Positions 7,113 to 18,971 of a stretch of DNA of 64,000 bases are shown here, in pieces. Position 1 is the first letter of the stretch. Each line of letters starts with the position of its first letter. Both the position numbers and the translations under genes were made by a program. Under the pieces are notes generated by a model that was not told the DNA's origin, did not search any database, and saw only the letters and a program-made list of their open reading frames with translations. The stretch lies in sequence record NC_061441.1; one strand, 5' to 3'.

Positions 7113-7448
7113 ATGGGTAATCCACATCGCTATGTGCATACGGCACAGCGCCGCTTCTATGGCAAACACTGGGTTAGCTTTTGTGATCTGATTCGTGTTG
7201 AACCGCAAAAGTACGGCGCATTCAATAGTCAGGATGATATGATCGGTCTGACGCTGCCGAAAGATTTTGATGTGGCCGAGGCAACAAAGAGCCTGCGCCA
7301 GATTTATGTGACGACTGACGAGAACGTAGAAGTACGCTGCTACCTGTTTGGTACTCGCTACTATAAGTTCGTATTCTTCGAGCAAACAATTGCCGTGAGC
7401 GAGGACACTGATGAGAACGTTAGCAAATATACCCGCCCGAGTGAATGA
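7113..7448 (+). CDS. Hypothetical protein
   Basis: 111 aa, AAGGA RBS. Confidence 0.7.
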   Translation: MGNPHRYVHTAQRRFYGKHWVSFCDLIRVEPQKYGAFNSQDDMIGLTLPKDFDVAEATKSLRQIYVTTDENVEVRCYLFGTRYYKFVFFEQTIAVSEDTDENVSKYTRPSE

Positions 7449-8496
7449 TACTCGCGGCCTGTCTCGCATCGGAAAAATGATTGATGCGGCTCTTGACGTA
7501 AAGAACCAAGAGAAGCGTTGGCCGAAGAAGCGCGTCAGTCCGTCCATGTTTCCTATCTGCCCGATTCAAGAAACAGCGAAACTGATTTACCAGAAGCACA
7601 ATAACTGCATGACCGGAGAGTCTGGTACGTTGCTGAACATCTTTGCGAAAGCAGGGACAGGGATGCACGAATCATTGCAGAATGCTCTGGGACACAGTGG
7701 TCAGATGGTTGGTCACTGGAAATGTACGAATGAAAAATGCGTCGAGTACCCGAAAACCAAAGGCAAGACAGTCGATGGTGAGTACGTCAAAGGCAAATAC
7801 ACGCGAACTCGAAGCACGAACAATCGTTGTCCGTCGTGCGATCAGCCTATGGCTTATGCAGAACTCAAAGTCCTGTACAAGTCACTCAAGGGTTACGTCG
7901 ATGGACTGATTGATAATCTGGACGGCACGTACAGTCTGATAGATTTGAAATCGACTATGGTGACCAAAGCTGCTGACGGAACCTTCTTCGTTAAGTATCA
8001 CCGCTTCCAGATCGCGACCTACGCATACCTGCTGAAAAAGCGTTACGGCTATAACATCGTGGACTATACCCTCGTCTACGTGCCACGCGACAACCCGAAG
8101 AAGTTTGTCGAGAAGACCTTTGTGTTTGACGAGGCAGAGTCGAAACGCGCCAAAGACTTTATGATGGAACAAATACGCGCATGGGATGCTGCGGTAAAAT
8201 CGGCTCGCACTGGCGACCTGCTGCCTGCTATTAAACGGAAGCCGTGCAAAAGCGCCGAGTATTATTGGGACGAGTTCCATGGATATGATACATGCCCTTT
8301 TGTTGACTATTGCTTTATTCAATCACACATGATTGACTTCATGAAGAAGTTAGAGCAGCGAATCATGGCCAACCCCGATCTTACTTATATGGAAATCGTA
8401 AGCACAGGTCGGAAAACTCAACAACAAGGTCTGCTGCCGGACAAGAAGCCAAAGTCTCAACGTCCGAAGCATATCGTAAAAACATTTGAGCTATGA
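7411..8496 (+). CDS. Cas4-like PD-(D/E)XK exonuclease (start uncertain: 7441 GTG or 7477 ATG)
   Basis: SPSMFPIC, GTGMHE, GYVDGLID, LIDLKS, QIATY and C-terminal PC...CPFVDYC (split 4Fe-4S-type Cys); extra C...CPSC insert. Confidence 0.8.
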   Translation: MRTLANIPARVNDTRGLSRIGKMIDAALDVKNQEKRWPKKRVSPSMFPICPIQETAKLIYQKHNNCMTGESGTLLNIFAKAGTGMHESLQNALGHSGQMVGHWKCTNEKCVEYPKTKGKTVDGEYVKGKYTRTRSTNNRCPSCDQPMAYAELKVLYKSLKGYVDGLIDNLDGTYSLIDLKSTMVTKAADGTFFVKYHRFQIATYAYLLKKRYGYNIVDYTLVYVPRDNPKKFVEKTFVFDEAESKRAKDFMMEQIRAWDAAVKSARTGDLLPAIKRKPCKSAEYYWDEFHGYDTCPFVDYCFIQSHMIDFMKKLEQRIMANPDLTYMEIVSTGRKTQQQGLLPDKKPKSQRPKHIVKTFEL

Positions 8497-11386: not shown

Positions 11387-12609
11387 TCAAGATGAGCAAT
11401 CTCGTTGGTACTGCTGTAGCTTTGGACCATTGTCGCTTCTACGTGGAGAACATGGTCAACATTCAATTCGGTAATGTTCTCGCTCCTGTTCCACCAGAAG
11501 TTCCGTACAACAAGCCGATCAACAGTCGTGTGCTGCATGGTATGATCAAACATACCGAACTCATGTTCGACAACTTCATTAGTCGCACTGACCTGCAATT
11601 CCCATACGCGCCGATTCTGTATCGTTTCCGTTCTATCTACGGCGTGTATGTTGGTCAATACGCCGATGACGTGCAGCCTGTTCGCGGCATCCGTCCTGTG
11701 TTGAAAGAACACCCGCGCAATCCTGTTCCTGTCAAAGCAGGCGGTGAGCCAGACAAAGAGTTTGCTTCGCGCTTCCTCAAGCATACGTCTGAACAGGTAC
11801 GTTCGTTCCTGTACATGGTGTGTCTCGATCAGTATGCGCGTGAGCAGACAGACGTATGGCTGCCTGCGCCTCCGTTTGACTTCGACCAGCCGACGAACAT
11901 TCATAACGAAAGCCCGATCGCGTTTACGACTACGCATGACGTTTTGGTCAATCACTTGATGGAAGCGATGTTGCAGACGTATAGCGATACTCTGGACATT
12001 CATGTGTCGCTGCGTGACTACGGTCTGACTGTGTTGTTCCCGCTGGTGGCTGAATGCCGCAACGTGATTTATGCCGCTTGGCCGATTACGCGCGAATCAT
12101 TCCGCACTCCTAAGTTTCTGGACGGCGGTGAGCACGTAGCGTTTGAAGATCTACCTGTTGATGACGACAAAGAGGTGTGGGAACCAATCCCGCCAATGGG
12201 ACCTACGTTCGAAAATCAGGCGGAGTGGGAAAAGGCTGTGACTGAAATTGCAGAGTCGTTCAAGCTGCAAGCATTCACGGATGACGGTGATTCATCGTTT
12301 ATCCTCAAGCCCGCTCTGTATGCTAGTGGTGATGACTTCCTGTTCTGGAACGAAGGTCCACTGACTGACAAGTCCATTTTCGATATCGCGGTCGTTCCTG
12401 TTGTAGGTCAGTCCTACACTGATCTCGAAGTGCTGTTGCGTAGCGTCGGCAAAACCATTCGTGAATACGCAGTAGCTCGTGAGTGTCACATCGTCGCCCG
12501 CTACATCGAACAGGAAGACCAAATCATCGGTGCACTGTTCCGTGTTCGTCGTAACATCGACTTCCCTAATTCGCCGCAAGAAGTAATGACTCACGTGGGG
12601 TTAGCATGA
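11383..12609 (+). CDS. Hypothetical protein; C-terminal half paralogous to 12606..13139
   Basis: 408 aa; CHIVARY...IIGALFRVRRNIDFP. Confidence 0.75.
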   Translation: MIKMSNLVGTAVALDHCRFYVENMVNIQFGNVLAPVPPEVPYNKPINSRVLHGMIKHTELMFDNFISRTDLQFPYAPILYRFRSIYGVYVGQYADDVQPVRGIRPVLKEHPRNPVPVKAGGEPDKEFASRFLKHTSEQVRSFLYMVCLDQYAREQTDVWLPAPPFDFDQPTNIHNESPIAFTTTHDVLVNHLMEAMLQTYSDTLDIHVSLRDYGLTVLFPLVAECRNVIYAAWPITRESFRTPKFLDGGEHVAFEDLPVDDDKEVWEPIPPMGPTFENQAEWEKAVTEIAESFKLQAFTDDGDSSFILKPALYASGDDFLFWNEGPLTDKSIFDIAVVPVVGQSYTDLEVLLRSVGKTIREYAVARECHIVARYIEQEDQIIGALFRVRRNIDFPNSPQEVMTHVGLA

Positions 12610-13139
12610 CAGATCAAGTAATCACATTCGAAGACCAGCAAAGCTGGGAAGACTTCGGTGAAGCTGTTCACAATGAGTTTTTGCTGAACACGATGACAGG
12701 TAGCAGTAGCGCCAGTCAGATCCCGAGTGTTGGTCCTAACGAAGGCGTGAAACATGCGCTGACCTATGCCAACATTCTTCGTGGTGAGCAGTCGCCTATC
12801 GTTGTGCTCGATTTGCTGATCGAAGAAGTTGCTTTGGCTGAGGGCGAGACTAGTCCTTTCGATGCTGATGGTCTTGAGCAGGCCGTGCGTAAAGTAGTGG
12901 CGTTGTATCAAGCGCGAGCGCGTGACCTCGACTGTCATATCACTGGTCAGTACCTGACAGATGATAACAAGGTCATCGGCGCATTGCTGCGTGTGTATCG
13001 CAATCAGGACTTCCCGTGTACTGGGCATCCTGAAATGCTGCACGGTAAACCAATCGGTATGTTCCACTGCGATAAGTGTCATGAGATGCAAGTCGCTGGT
13101 ACGTTCCATCTTCCCAAAGAGGAAACTCAAAATGGTTAA
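12606..13139 (+). CDS. Hypothetical protein with C-terminal Cys/His cluster
   Basis: 177 aa; CHITGQY...VIGALLRVYRNQDFP; C..H..H...HCxxCH tail. Confidence 0.75.
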   Translation: MTDQVITFEDQQSWEDFGEAVHNEFLLNTMTGSSSASQIPSVGPNEGVKHALTYANILRGEQSPIVVLDLLIEEVALAEGETSPFDADGLEQAVRKVVALYQARARDLDCHITGQYLTDDNKVIGALLRVYRNQDFPCTGHPEMLHGKPIGMFHCDKCHEMQVAGTFHLPKEETQNG

Positions 13140-13599
13140 AGGTGGGTTGTGGCGTGTCTTCCCTGACTACGACTCGGAAGCATTGCTGATGAAGCTCGGC
13201 GCCGCTATCGGTATCGAGCACGACGAAGACGATGTGCCTGGAGAATTGCACGTTACTCTGGCTTACGACGAATCGAACCCTGACGTCAAGGCCGAGCAGA
13301 ACGATGCTGGTGAGTTCTTCGCTACCGTCAAATGTGCTAAGTTGTTTGGCGAAGGTCAAGATAGGATTCTGGTACTCGTACTTGAATCACCTGACCTGTG
13401 TGCAGAACATGATCGCATCCACGCATGTGGTGCCGCCCAGTTCGCATTCAAGCCGTACCGCCCTCACGTCACGCTGTTGAAGTCTGCCAAAGACAGCCAA
13501 GCTGAACATCTCAATCAGATCATTCAGCACCCAGGCCGTCCTCCAATCACTCTGCGCTTCATTGAAGAAGATCGCAAGGTGCTGGAGAAGCGTAACTAA
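13132..13599 (+). CDS. 2H phosphoesterase, Acb1 (T4 gp57B)-like anti-CBASS nuclease
   Basis: Two HxT motifs (LHVTLAY, PHVTLL); LVLVLESPDL..EH...GA....Y.PHVTL parallels the recalled T4 57B sequence; GAGGA RBS. Confidence 0.8.
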   Translation: MVKGGLWRVFPDYDSEALLMKLGAAIGIEHDEDDVPGELHVTLAYDESNPDVKAEQNDAGEFFATVKCAKLFGEGQDRILVLVLESPDLCAEHDRIHACGAAQFAFKPYRPHVTLLKSAKDSQAEHLNQIIQHPGRPPITLRFIEEDRKVLEKRN

Positions 13600-13604
13600 A
13601 TCCT

Positions 13605-13630
13605 AGCGGTGGCCATGTGCTGCCGCTTTT
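13605..13630 (+). terminator. Intrinsic terminator
   Basis: AGCGGTGGC-CATGT-GCTGCCGCT-TTT. Confidence 0.7.
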
Positions 13631-13650
13631 GTCGTTCTGGAGATATTTCT

Positions 13651-13980
13651 ATGGAAATGATGGTAAGTCTTAGTCACGAAATTCGCGTGGAGAAACAGGA
13701 CAACACTGCGAACGAAGCGCAGACTCAAGGTCCTACTGACGCGCAGCAACGCGCTCTTGATCTCGAAGACCAGCGCCGCATTGCGGAAGAATACGGTATC
13801 GACGCTCCCAAGGAAGAGATTGAAGAAAAGGAGAAGGAACGTATCGAGCGTGAGAAAGAAAAAGAAGAGGAGAATCGCGTTAGACCACCAGCAGACCTTG
13901 GGCAGCGCAAGCCTATCGAAGACAAAGATGTTACCGCTACAGATATCCAAAATGAGCACGATAACCTGACGAAGATCTAG
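13651..13980 (+). CDS. Charged, disordered protein (MEMMVSLSHE...)
   Basis: GGAG RBS; E/K/R-rich. Confidence 0.7.
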   Translation: MEMMVSLSHEIRVEKQDNTANEAQTQGPTDAQQRALDLEDQRRIAEEYGIDAPKEEIEEKEKERIEREKEKEEENRVRPPADLGQRKPIEDKDVTATDIQNEHDNLTKI

Positions 13981-13981
13981 G

Positions 13982-13993
13982 AATCTGTAAATA
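13982..13993 (+). promoter_or_regulatory. AATCTGTAAATA motif upstream of the sigma gene
   Basis: Exact intergenic copy. Confidence 0.6.
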
Positions 13994-14025
13994 AGAGTCA
14001 AAGCAACTAACAGGTGTATTTGACC

Positions 14026-15063
14026 ATGAACAATAAGTCGAATCTCACGGGCGGTCAGATAGAAAGCGTCATGGACACCATGTTGCATGACTGCCTCCGT
14101 GAGATTGTTGAGAACACGGATATCTTCGATATCCAATTGACCTACTTGTTGGGTCTGGTTACGTCAAATAAAAAGCGAAAGCCATACAACGCAGAAACGC
14201 GTGAACGAGCTATCAGCCTTCTGATTAAAGCGCTCTCTGTACCGCGTGACCAGAAGATGGTTTTCATTCAGGAACTTAAAATGGAGCGTAACTTCATTTA
14301 TGTCTTCCTGGAAAATGTAATTAAGCGGTACTACTCGGTGTATGTCGATTTGTACCGTGCATTCATCACGACGCAAGATCCAATCAAGCGCGTGGCGTAT
14401 TCAAAACGACTGGACGTGTATGTGAAGATGTTTGGTGCTGAGTCTCGCTCCAAGCTGTTTGTGGCGTTGTGTCGTTTGAATGACCTACTGCCGCAGTTCA
14501 TGGAATACTTCCACTCGGTAGTTGCTGACTTCTATCGTCTGTGCAGCAAGCAGACCAAATTCTATGTTGATACCAATCGTGGTAAACTCTACGACAGCAA
14601 AGACGTGCGCCAGAACTTCCTGCGTAACGTTATCATTGCAATCAACAAGTATGACTCATCGCGTGGTGCGATAGTCAGTTATACGAAGTGGTGGATTCTG
14701 AACGCTCAAACCTGTAGTAGCAGCGAGCACGAATACGGCATCGCCTACACTATTCCCCAGACTCAACGTAAGAAACTGGCGACAGGTGAAGATACCACTT
14801 CTCTAAATTTCTCGGTAAGTCTCGATACTCCAGCCAATGAATCTGATGAAGGTGCGGACGCGTCCCTACATCAAAAGGTGAGTGACCATCATCACCTGGA
14901 AGATCACGTTGATAGTGAAAGACGTACCGAAAAACTGAGACTGCTTATTAAGCGCGTTGACCCTCTCGGTGTTGCTCGACTAACGATGGACGTTGGCGAG
15001 GAGTTCGATAAGTTTGAACTCGACCTCATGCGTAAACATATGCAAGCTCAAGGGCTAGCCTAA
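14026..15063 (+). CDS. Phage RNA polymerase sigma70-like factor
   Basis: Region-2-like DVRQNF...IIAINKYDSSRG..VSYTKWWILNA; SLDTP region-3-like motif. Confidence 0.75.
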   Translation: MNNKSNLTGGQIESVMDTMLHDCLREIVENTDIFDIQLTYLLGLVTSNKKRKPYNAETRERAISLLIKALSVPRDQKMVFIQELKMERNFIYVFLENVIKRYYSVYVDLYRAFITTQDPIKRVAYSKRLDVYVKMFGAESRSKLFVALCRLNDLLPQFMEYFHSVVADFYRLCSKQTKFYVDTNRGKLYDSKDVRQNFLRNVIIAINKYDSSRGAIVSYTKWWILNAQTCSSSEHEYGIAYTIPQTQRKKLATGEDTTSLNFSVSLDTPANESDEGADASLHQKVSDHHHLEDHVDSERRTEKLRLLIKRVDPLGVARLTMDVGEEFDKFELDLMRKHMQAQGLA

Positions 15064-15074
15064 AACTGTAAACA
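15063..15074 (+). promoter_or_regulatory. Variant motif AAACTGTAAACA upstream of the SSB gene
   Basis: 2 mismatches to AATCTGTAAATA, intergenic. Confidence 0.45.
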
Positions 15075-15112
15075 GTGCATATCATAGCACAACTCAATAT
15101 TGAGGAAATATA

Positions 15113-16381
<1,269 letters not shown>

Positions 16382-16391
16382 TTCGCAACAC

Positions 16392-16420
16392 GGGGTAGCT
16401 TAGGCTGCCCCTTCTTTTCT
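16392..16420 (+). terminator. Intrinsic terminator
   Basis: GGGGTAGC-TTAG-GCTGCCCC-TTCTTTT. Confidence 0.8.
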
Positions 16421-16439
16421 CAATCTGGACTATCCCACA

Positions 16440-18971
16440 ATGGCGAAAACGAACAACAAGGCTGAGAAGAAGGCCGAGAAGAAAGCTAAAGTCAAAGCTC
16501 TGAAAAGCGGAGAAAAGGCAGTAGCTTCTGATGATATCGGCGGCGTTGAAATTCAAGGCTTCGACCTCGCAAGTTTGATGGACGATGTGCTTGACGGCAT
16601 CGAAAAGAAAACGAAAGTAAGTTCGCAGGATGCAGCGCGACACGCACCGCGTATCTCAACAGGCTGTCTGGCGCTTGACATGTATTTGTCTGGCGGTATC
16701 GTACCTGGCGGTTGGTACACATTCAGCGGCGGTGAGCAGTCATGTAAGTCAACAATGACCATGAGCATTATGGCGAGCCTGATTCGTCTGAAATACTCTG
16801 GCATTAGCGTAGTGTTCGACTACGAAGGTTCAACCGATGCCGAGTACGTTGCTGGTCAGTTGAAAACGTTCGGCGTTAAGGTCGACCCGAAAACTATCTT
16901 CGGTGTGCGTGACGATAAAGACGGTAGCTGGATCGTTAAGCCTAAGATCCGTTACTACGCACCAGACAACGGTGAGCGCTTCTTCGATTATATGTCGATG
17001 CTGCGTCGTCGTCTGCCTGACAAAATCGTTGAGAAAGACGGCACCGCGTATTACATCTTTGAGAACAACAAAGAGAACGCGAAGAAGCTGGCAGGCAAGT
17101 ACGATAAGAAATGGTTCAGCCGTAACAACCAGTTCAAAGTACCTGCGCCAGACGGCCACATGCAGGCGATGGTTATCGTTGACTCCTATCCTGCGATGAT
17201 GCCAGATCAGGTCGATGACGATGACGGCTCGAAAGCAATGGCGCTGCAAGCGCGTATGTTCTCTGACGGCATCAAACGTTTCCGTGGCGGTATGCGTCGT
17301 AAGATGATGACTATCGTTGGCGTTAACCAGTTGCGTCAGAAGCCAGCAGTAATGTTCGGCAGCCCGGAGTATGAGCCTGGTGGTGATGCGTTGAAGTTCT
17401 ATTGCTTCGACCGTGACACTCTGATTCGTACTGACCACGGCGTATTGACTGCACCGCAGATTAAAGCGCTGATGGACGAAGGCAAAGAAGTTGCCGTTGA
17501 GTCGTTCGATGGTTATCAGAAAATCAACGGCGCATGGCTTGTCAATGACGCTCCGTTCCCGTTCGAACTGAATGCTGGTGGTCATGTGTATGTTGGCTCG
17601 GCCGAACATCGCCAGTTCACGTTCATGCACGATCTGACTGCCGAAGGTACTCCAGTTCTGCGTCCTGAATGGAACACGCTGAATCAACTGGCGCAGTACC
17701 CAGAGCAGAAAGGTCAGTACGCTGGTCTGCGTGTACCACCAGTTAAGGAACTGAAAGAGAATGTTCCTGACGCCTTCGATGAAGCCTCACAACTGGTAAG
17801 CAATCTGCTTGGAAACTGCGACCCTGTTAGCAAGCAACTGCCGCTGGTGACTCACGGTGATACCACCTACGCTGCAAACTGTCTGTTCATCGACACTGTG
17901 GGCGAAGACACCGACACTGGTTCGTTCTCGTTCTGGGTAGAGAAGTTACTGGCCATCGGCGTATTTGCTTACGCTGACGAAAGCGGTATCTGGATTCCAG
18001 GTCTGAACAAACACGAACTGGAAGCGGCTGTAGCGCAGGACGAACTCGGTGCGTTTGCTGGTATCAGTTTTGAAGCGACCTGTCGTCAACGTCAGACTCA
18101 AATGCTGACCGTGATTGTCGATCACTTCCCTGAGCTGGTACGTTACGTTCTCGACTATCAGTTGCAGACGGGCGAAGACAAAATCTACCTGGCGCCTGAG
18201 AACGACTTCGCACAAGCGCTTGACCTGATTCTGCACAAAGAGATCGCTGGTTACGACGACTACTATGACCTGCTGATGTTCCAGCTGGCGTATGTCGATG
18301 ACTGGTACAACTTCGATTCCTCAATTCTGCCTGTGCCGTTTACGCTTCGTGCGCTCAACGAACAGCGTGAGTTCTGGGACGTGAACGTTGAAGAAACGTC
18401 GGTAGTAATCACCAACGGCTTCGTCAGTCACAACAGCGACGTGCGTGTGCGACTGGCTTCTCGTGCGGTACCAGAAGGCTGGCCGAAACTGAAAGATGCT
18501 CCTGGCATCGTCGGTGAGAAGTCGGTAACAGTTGAAGGAGGTACTGACCGCTATCGCTTCATCGCTGCTAAGACCATCAAGAACAAGATGGGCGGCATCC
18601 CTAACCAGCAGACGTGGTTACGTTTGTGGGAAGCTGACGGTAACGGTGAAGCTCGCGGTTTCGACCCAGTGTTCGATACGTGGCACTACCTGAAAACTCT
18701 GGGTCTGGTCAATGGTAGCCGTAAGTCGTTCAAGCTGAAAGCTCCGTGCCCGCTCGCATCTGATGTTAAGATGGATTGGGATGACTTCCGTACACTCATC
18801 AACGGCAGCAAAGAACAAGTTGTTGGCGTGTGTAAGAAACTGAAAGTCAAACCTGCGGGCCTGCGTCTGTGGTGCTTCAAGTTCGTTCAGTCCACTAAGG
18901 GCAACGAAATGTTGAAGAACGCAATCAGTAAGTCTGCCAAGAAGTCTGATGACGACGACGGCGACGAGTAA
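16440..18971 (+). CDS. recA: RecA/UvsX recombinase containing an intein
   Basis: ISTGCLALD..LSGG, Walker A GGEQSCKST, VIVDS, VNQLRQ, PGGDALKFY|SDVR, KTIKNK; 843 aa, 499 aa after splicing. Confidence 0.92.
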   Translation: MAKTNNKAEKKAEKKAKVKALKSGEKAVASDDIGGVEIQGFDLASLMDDVLDGIEKKTKVSSQDAARHAPRISTGCLALDMYLSGGIVPGGWYTFSGGEQSCKSTMTMSIMASLIRLKYSGISVVFDYEGSTDAEYVAGQLKTFGVKVDPKTIFGVRDDKDGSWIVKPKIRYYAPDNGERFFDYMSMLRRRLPDKIVEKDGTAYYIFENNKENAKKLAGKYDKKWFSRNNQFKVPAPDGHMQAMVIVDSYPAMMPDQVDDDDGSKAMALQARMFSDGIKRFRGGMRRKMMTIVGVNQLRQKPAVMFGSPEYEPGGDALKFYCFDRDTLIRTDHGVLTAPQIKALMDEGKEVAVESFDGYQKINGAWLVNDAPFPFELNAGGHVYVGSAEHRQFTFMHDLTAEGTPVLRPEWNTLNQLAQYPEQKGQYAGLRVPPVKELKENVPDAFDEASQLVSNLLGNCDPVSKQLPLVTHGDTTYAANCLFIDTVGEDTDTGSFSFWVEKLLAIGVFAYADESGIWIPGLNKHELEAAVAQDELGAFAGISFEATCRQRQTQMLTVIVDHFPELVRYVLDYQLQTGEDKIYLAPENDFAQALDLILHKEIAGYDDYYDLLMFQLAYVDDWYNFDSSILPVPFTLRALNEQREFWDVNVEETSVVITNGFVSHNSDVRVRLASRAVPEGWPKLKDAPGIVGEKSVTVEGGTDRYRFIAAKTIKNKMGGIPNQQTWLRLWEADGNGEARGFDPVFDTWHYLKTLGLVNGSRKSFKLKAPCPLASDVKMDWDDFRTLINGSKEQVVGVCKKLKVKPAGLRLWCFKFVQSTKGNEMLKNAISKSAKKSDDDDGDE
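17403..18434 (+). mobile_element. Intein (344 aa) in recA
   Basis: Starts with Cys (CFDRDTLI) after ALKFY; block B SAEH; block F FWDVNV; ends SHN followed by Ser; extein motif KFY-SDVR is restored on removal. Confidence 0.92.

Follow-up and report, generated by a model that had tools for sequence, protein, structure and literature searches.

Enzymes of the Acb1 family serve phages to eliminate the cyclic nucleotides by which bacterial CBASS immunity raises its alarm. Cleavage of 3'3'-cGAMP and cAAA has been described for Acb1 of phage T4 and nine of its homologues (Hobbs 2022, PMC9117128). The proteins of Erwinia phage FBB1 and of T4 carry a H44/T46/H113/T115 tetrad and four stacking aromatic residues, Y12, W74, F107 and W147. 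Their E141 residue touches the adenine N6, so that at least one adenine is required in the substrate, and a C-terminal lid spanning residues 145-152 becomes ordered over the ligand (PMC9117128). More generally, the viral 2H phosphodiesterases (PDEs) fall into structural groups with sharply different substrate scope (Doherty 2025, bioRxiv 10.1101/2025.08.21.671373). Structural group 3, which includes T4 Acb1, PDE-8 and PDE-9, is the broadest on CBASS-type messengers, and two 2H structural groups were inactive on a panel of 18 messengers. According to the same preprint (10.1101/2025.08.21.671373), specificity is set by the enzyme core and not by the lid, the latter mattering most for the less-preferred substrate. 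The active site of PDE-9, from Burkholderia phage BCSR5, is closed by an N-terminal lid (residues 1-15); the enzyme spares 2'3'-c-di-AMP, and when deprived of its lid it still degraded 3'3'-cGAMP over an hour. A lid-deleted T4 Acb1 fails to trigger Panoptes, which the authors of the preprint read as a need for the lid in catalysis (10.1101/2025.08.21.671373). The accessible portions of the supplements to Hobbs 2022 (PMC9117128) and of the set of 75 PDEs of Doherty 2025 (10.1101/2025.08.21.671373) contain no member of the clade considered here, that of the gp243 protein of an Erwinia jumbo phage.

Coding frame and genomic neighbourhood of gp243

The window, a stretch of 64,000 nucleotides analysed as a whole, matches Erwinia phage pEa_SNUABM_16 (Alexandravirus; genome 266.8 kb; host Erwinia amylovora) with 100% identity. 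Window positions are obtained by subtracting 186000 from the positions of the sequence record. The features surrounding the gene are as follows.

11392-12609: gp241, an orphan gene upstream of gp242, in one unit with gp242 and gp243; overlaps gp242 by 4 nt
12606-13139, plus strand: gp242, an orphan (phrog_29033) directly upstream of gp243
13119-13123, plus strand: Shine-Dalgarno-like GAGGA, separated from the gp243 ATG by an 8-nt spacer; GAGGAA or GGAGAA in relatives
13132-13599, plus strand: gp243 coding sequence, putative Acb1-family 2H phosphodiesterase of 155 aa (RefSeq MPK64_gp243, record 199132-199599)
13605-13637, plus strand: hairpin (9 bp, -15.3 kcal/mol; z -1.9) followed by a T-rich run

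A mechanical list of open reading frames reports a 212-codon frame at 12961-13599 on the plus strand, within which an internal ATG at 13132 opens the 155-aa product. The preliminary description had placed the real start at this internal codon, and four lines of evidence agree with it: the RefSeq start, the GAGGA motif, the 8-nt overlap between the gp243 ATG and the stop of the upstream gene (ATGGTTAA), and the state of the upstream stretch in relatives. Indeed, the ATG of gp243 and its ribosome-binding site are both retained in 13 relatives, and the upstream in-frame part of the longer frame is either interrupted by stops (as in relatives L005 and L007) or has lost its ATG. The frame starting at 12961 was rejected as a gene on these grounds. 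Within the coding part of gp243, dN/dS values among relatives ranged from 0.05 to 0.16; the gene is under strong purifying selection.

The hairpin at 13605-13637 is probably the intrinsic terminator closing the gp241-gp242-gp243 unit, although its features are only suggestive. Downstream from gp243 lie a small ORF and the genes for a sigma-like factor, SSB and UvsX, a context that differs from that of the T4 gene (57A/ipI). Gene order was compared in a single other phage, Dickeya phage JA29 (Salmondvirus), where the segment L019 2486-6438 reproduces the order of window positions 12606-18971: first an upstream ORF whose end overlaps the start of the PDE, then the PDE itself, followed by a small ORF and the genes for a sigma-like factor of 345 aa, SSB and RecA/UvsX. 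Conservation of this order in a Salmondvirus suggests that gp243 belongs to a conserved block, with no obvious variable anti-defence island.

Neither gp241 nor gp242 matches a Pfam family. The two are paralogous, residues 272-401 of gp241 aligning with residues 7-146 of gp242 (31% identity, E 4e-13). The final 45 or so residues of gp242, rich in His and Cys (phrog_29033 / phrog_34602), have counterparts of about 57% identity in jumbo phages that include PaBG and Xanthomonas phages. Elsewhere in the window, gp233 (7411-8496) bears the RefSeq label 'CRISPR/Cas system associated'.

Catalytic motifs and family assignment

Three features of the coding sequence are relevant to its classification.

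13249-13257, plus strand: first catalytic HxT, H40-V41-T42; H40 and T42 invariant in 69 family members
13465-13473, plus strand: second catalytic HxT, H112-V113-T114; H112 invariant in the 69 family members, T114 being T or S
13492-13524, plus strand: helix, residues 121-131, 3' of the second HxT; present in BCSR5 PDE-9, deleted in T4-type Acb1

The Acb1-like reading had been proposed from two HxT motifs with Acb1-like spacing and from a segment paralleling T4 gp57B. Both motifs are present, as HVT at residues 40-42 and 112-114, with a His-to-His distance of 72 residues (69 in T4). The quoted gp243 segment occupies residues 79-115, and the T4 segment given alongside it is exact to the letter when compared with NC_000866. 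Using T4 numbering for Acb1 residues, here and below, MAFFT and hhalign superimpose the H44/T46/H113/T115 tetrad on H40/T42/H112/T114 of gp243. The tetrad is intact.

Among all Pfam and NCBIfam models, only the Pfam Acb1 model, PF23474, scored above its own cut-off with gp243 (45 bits versus a cut-off of 27; E 1.2e-11). The match takes in no more than the catalytic core, from position 32 to position 122 of the 144 in the profile, and T4 Acb1 reaches 203 bits on the same profile. The LigT-type models all stayed under cut-off: PF13563 (2_5_RNA_ligase2) with 26 versus 27, PF02834 (LigT_PEase) with 17.7 versus 23.3, and TIGR02258, the NCBIfam equivalog for RNA 2',3'-cyclic phosphodiesterase, with 24.6 versus 65.7. 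The AKAP7_NLS model of Pfam also stayed below its cut-off. PHROG 755 aligns with gp243 from end to end (E 1.2e-28). BLASTP revealed 35% identity to T4 Acb1 across an 84-residue core, and hhalign of the gp243 clade against 13 T4-type Acb1 proteins returned a probability of 99.4% (E 9.4e-22, 142 columns). In PDB, a phmmer search with gp243 alone found FBB1 Acb1 (7t26, E 1.9e-4) and nothing else; a profile of the clade found 7t26 (E 3.3e-6) and both entries for the BCSR5 enzyme (9q2g, E 3.7e-5), the depositors of 9q2g having named it 'Anti-CBASS protein Acb1'. A word search yielded 16 close relatives. A profile search of 5.8 billion proteins yielded 79, every one of which (79/79) carries PF23474. 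In viral contigs, the gp243 protein and an alignment, used as separate queries, both led to one set of 14 close relatives and no further; T4-type Acb1 was reached with the profile. Judged from these sequence comparisons, the resemblance to Acb1 is far beyond chance, and gp243 is a distant, divergent member of the Acb1 family.

An AF2 model of gp243, built on 69 sequences, has a mean pLDDT of 90.7 and a pTM of 0.86. When this model was compared with PDB by Foldseek, 9q2y/9q2g ranked first (TM 0.77) and 7t26/7t27 second; below the Acb1-type entries came Arabidopsis CPDase, Usb1, TT0787, the penguinpox cGAMP PDE and LigT. The VIA-align scores rank the structures in a similar manner: Z 16.3 for 9q2y (rmsd 2.5 A, 141 residues), Z 16.2 for 7t26 (rmsd 2.3 A, 134 residues), Z 12.4 for Arabidopsis CPDase (1jh6) and Z 10.2-11.1 for LigT. 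The nearest BFVD models are those of proteins that UniProt calls 'Anti-CBASS protein Acb1', from jumbo phages JA29, fHe-Yen9-04, pEt-SU, RisingSun and PaBG. The predicted fold thus groups gp243, as a model-based assignment, with T4/FBB1 Acb1 and BCSR5 PDE-9 in structure. The Acb1-like reading in the preliminary description finds support in the Pfam score, the hhalign result and the structure comparison. The profile and structure comparisons with Acb1 that it had called for both favoured Acb1 over LigT. A closer relationship to LigT-type 2',3'-cyclic phosphodiesterases, which it had named as the outcome that would overturn the assignment, was not found, these enzymes lying some 4-5 Z units further away.

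Like gp243, T4 gp57B and FBB1 Acb1 (7T26, 7T27) are phage-encoded proteins of about 150 aa with a compact 2H fold and an HxT/HxT tetrad. Unlike T4 Acb1, gp243 has the additional helix (121-131) past the second HxT, and the invariant Arg of the T4-type 'RH' is replaced by Glu (E92). PDE-9 of BCSR5 (9Q2Y, 9Q2G), the best structural match, shares with gp243 the helix past the second HxT, the lack of a C-terminal Trp lid and an origin in a large phage, although identity is only 23-25%. Members of the LigT family (E. coli LigT 5LDI, T. thermophilus 1IUH, Arabidopsis CPDase 1JH6) have the 2H superfamily fold and HxT/S chemistry in common with gp243, but differ from it by larger size (about 170-185 aa) and poorer superposition (Z 11-12.4, rmsd 3.7-4.3 A).

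A quick maximum-likelihood tree with SH-aLRT supports, in which several branches are long, assigned gp243 to a clade of 25 members (support 97) made up of Alexandravirus, Yoloswag-type and Salmondvirus proteins and uncultured relatives. The family is conserved across this clade of enterobacterial jumbo phages. The proteins of Dickeya phage JA29 and Erwinia phage Yoloswag, which belong to the clade, are 39-47% identical to gp243. A close relative of the phage (G001, 97% identical) has one copy only, genome-wide, by the Acb1 model.

A separate observation from the clade-profile search concerns the portal protein of cyanophage Pam3 (PDB 8hds_A), residues 499-593 of which, in its C-terminal part, matched with E 0.0075, both H-x-T/S-like motifs being in register. 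The alignment suggests that this portal may carry a fused 2H-like domain.

Substrate-contact residues and the missing lid

The positions corresponding to the ligand contacts of T4 Acb1 lie near the two ends of the gene.

13147-13149, plus strand: codon of L6; the residue aligns with Y12 of T4 Acb1, which stacks on a base, and is Tyr in sister clades
13576-13578, plus strand: codon of K149; the residue aligns with E141 of T4 Acb1, which contacts adenine N6, and is Glu in sister clades
13585-13596, plus strand: C-terminal polar tail EKRN, four residues, where T4/FBB1 have an 8-9-residue lid with W147; pLDDT 67 in this last block

Pocket-lining residues were defined from the published FBB1/T4 contacts, and their equivalents in gp243 by sequence and profile alignment, which for Y12, E141 and W147 concerns both termini, where the protein diverges most. 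Aromatic residues occupy the W74 and F107 positions in gp243 as they do in T4/FBB1 Acb1: W74 corresponds to F72, which is invariant in the clade, and F107 to F106, where close relatives have Phe or His. By contrast, MAFFT and hhalign agree in aligning Y12 with L6, so that by alignment the stacking Tyr is a Leu, in aligning E141 with K149, and in finding no counterpart of W147. Thus, two of the four base-stacking residues of T4/FBB1 Acb1 (Y12 and W147), together with the adenine-specific Glu, are not conserved in gp243. Shifting the alignment by one residue would bring the invariant W7 to the position of Y12, but this option was discarded: R8 would then enter the register of the hydrophobic core, and both alignments favour L6.

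The exchanges at these two positions are confined to one part of the tree. Within the clade, Leu at the Y12 position and Lys at the E141 position occur in the Alexandravirus subclade (support 99) alone, and the Yoloswag and JA29 sister clades keep Tyr and Glu. The loss of the C-terminal lid is more general: the DLDW lid is absent from all 25 members of the clade, the JA29 and Yoloswag proteins included. Beyond the last strand, gp243 has four residues, all polar, versus nine in T4 Acb1. At the other end, three residues precede the first strand, and neither terminal tail contains an aromatic. The lid of PDE-9 sits at the opposite terminus from that of T4 Acb1, so that not every enzyme of the Acb1 family has its lid at the C terminus. 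Residue 2 of the gp243 model aligns with residue 15 of PDE-9, and hence gp243 has no equivalent of the N-terminal lid of that enzyme either. Yoloswag-type proteins differ from gp243 in having 6-13 additional N-terminal residues, and the uncultured relatives have more.

In another subgroup of the Acb1 family (P0064, P0073, P0075 and P0080; about 207 aa, one cluster numbering 134 members), a C-terminal extension of some 54 residues (DLDK...ITEH...GDKWV...) takes the place of the Trp lid.

Probable function and significance

Most likely, gp243 cleaves cyclic oligonucleotide immune signals. We assign a probability of roughly 0.65 to its being an Acb1-family 2H phosphodiesterase that is competent in catalysis and degrades CBASS-type cyclic-nucleotide signals. 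The intact catalytic machinery, combined with strong purifying selection, makes an active phosphodiesterase the sensible default; that its substrates are of this class and that it acts against CBASS is inferred, and degradation of the same CBASS signals as by T4 Acb1 would be a further inference. In the mechanism envisaged, the HxT motifs H40/T42 and H112/T114 would face each other from strands on either side of a U-shaped cleft and carry out metal-independent acid-base catalysis, in which a ribose 2'-OH of a small cyclic oligonucleotide attacks its 3'-5' phosphodiester. The ring would open via a 2',3'-cyclic phosphate intermediate. In this way, the alarm signal made by a host CD-NTase (a CBASS messenger of the 3'3'-cGAMP type) could be destroyed before it activates an abortive-infection effector. 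Against this interpretation count the rarity of CBASS in E. amylovora, the position of the gene in a conserved core, the weakness of the Pfam match, the exchanges at the Y12 and E141 positions, the loss of the lid and the sharp differences in substrate scope between 2H structural groups. On the first point, a 2026 survey (PMC13480210) describes CBASS type I as a low-prevalence defence in E. amylovora genomes. In this survey, acb1 is found in Erwinia phages more often than any other anti-defence gene (61/227), and the Alexandraviruses are likely to be counted among the 61 acb1-positive phages.

Leu in place of Tyr, Lys in place of Glu and the lack of a functional-looking lid at either end make it probable that the substrate range of the Alexandravirus enzyme is not identical to that of T4 Acb1. 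It is possible, if on balance doubtful, that nature has here produced an Acb1 without a lid and with a remodelled adenine pocket (Leu for Tyr, Lys for Glu), the substrate range of this Alexandravirus enzyme being materially unlike that of T4 Acb1. If so, it might, for instance, have lost the adenine requirement, or its range might have narrowed so as to disarm CBASS yet spare 2'3'-c-di-AMP and avoid setting off decoy-based systems such as Panoptes. A related alternative to the CBASS-degrading enzyme favoured above keeps fold and chemistry but assigns them to a different signal, the protein being an Acb1-fold PDE that has been retuned to substrates other than the set cleaved by T4 Acb1: signals without adenine, a narrow subset of cyclic dinucleotides that spares 2'3'-c-di-AMP and does not trip Panoptes, or linear or 2'-5'-linked oligonucleotides. 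The confinement of both substitutions to the Alexandravirus subclade, the absence from gp243 of both the W147 lid and a lid of the PDE-9 type, and the findings that the core sets specificity and that PDE-9 spares 2'3'-c-di-AMP (Doherty 2025) are in line with such retuning. Yet the residue equivalences come from alignment at the most divergent ends of the protein, F72 and F106 are kept, and the nearest structural neighbours all cleave 3'3'-cGAMP, so that we hold a change of signal to be unlikely.

The names in the databases imply a different activity, that of a LigT-type RNA 2',3'-cyclic phosphodiesterase healing the ends of damaged tRNA or mRNA: gp243 is an 'RNA ligase' in RefSeq, and relatives are listed as 'putative cyclic phosphodiesterase' in GenBank. 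The sub-threshold matches to PF13563, PF02834 and TIGR02258, the chemistry common to all 2H enzymes and the helix past the second HxT, a canonical 2H feature, could be read in the same sense. This activity becomes quite improbable when one considers that the LigT models stay under curated cut-offs that the Acb1 model exceeds, that the structural Z is about 11 for LigT as opposed to 16 for Acb1 and PDE-9, and that gp243, at 155 aa, is as compact as Acb1. Moreover, the G001 genome (97% identical) lacks a match to RtcB and has a single sub-threshold match to PF09414 (RNA_ligase), in a 659-aa ORF far from the gp243 homologue. Blank results with the models PF09511 (Rnl1) and PF13876 (Acb2/Vs.4) carry no weight, as their controls gave no match anywhere either. 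As for the RefSeq name, it is that of PHROG 755 and is applied to T4 57B/Acb1 as well. A catalytically feeble or non-enzymatic protein, such as a nucleotide binder or one with a structural role, in which lid loss has ended efficient turnover, would fit the failure of lid-deleted T4 Acb1 in the in vivo Panoptes assay and the existence of two 2H structural groups inactive on 18 messengers. Strict conservation of the HxT/HxT tetrad, strong purifying selection and the degradation of 3'3'-cGAMP by lid-less PDE-9 over an hour make this possibility scarcely credible.

The product is called 'RNA ligase' in RefSeq and 'hypothetical protein' in GenBank; the founding Acb1, T4 57B (NC_000866 73952-74410), is also an 'RNA ligase' in RefSeq. 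The name comes from the PHROG 755 label and the superfamily name, '2'-5' RNA ligase'. It is a legacy misnomer that does not testify to ligase activity, and the present analysis corrects this misleading public label for gp243. The assignment to the Acb1 family is not new, automated resources already recognising the family: in UniRef, the 89%-identical protein of pEa_SNUABM_2 and the proteins of JA29, JA33 and Yoloswag are 'Anti-CBASS protein Acb1'. The interest of gp243 resides, besides its wrong product name, in the lack of a lid at either terminus and in the exchange of the residue that reads adenine. With the lid missing at both ends in the clade and the adenine-reading residue swapped in Alexandravirus, the group constitutes a natural experiment on the respective parts of core and lid in substrate specificity, a question that stems from the recent work on viral 2H phosphodiesterases.

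The analysis also locates a putative signal-degrading enzyme of the Acb1 family in a core region conserved throughout a group of jumbo phages of Erwinia and Dickeya that are considered for biocontrol of fire blight and soft rot, and a counter-defence gene bears on the host strains that such phages can kill. Sequencing runs with partial word matches, none of them infection RNA-seq, were of DNA from the phyllosphere and from silage, with a single metatranscriptome, from wastewater (0.11 of words).
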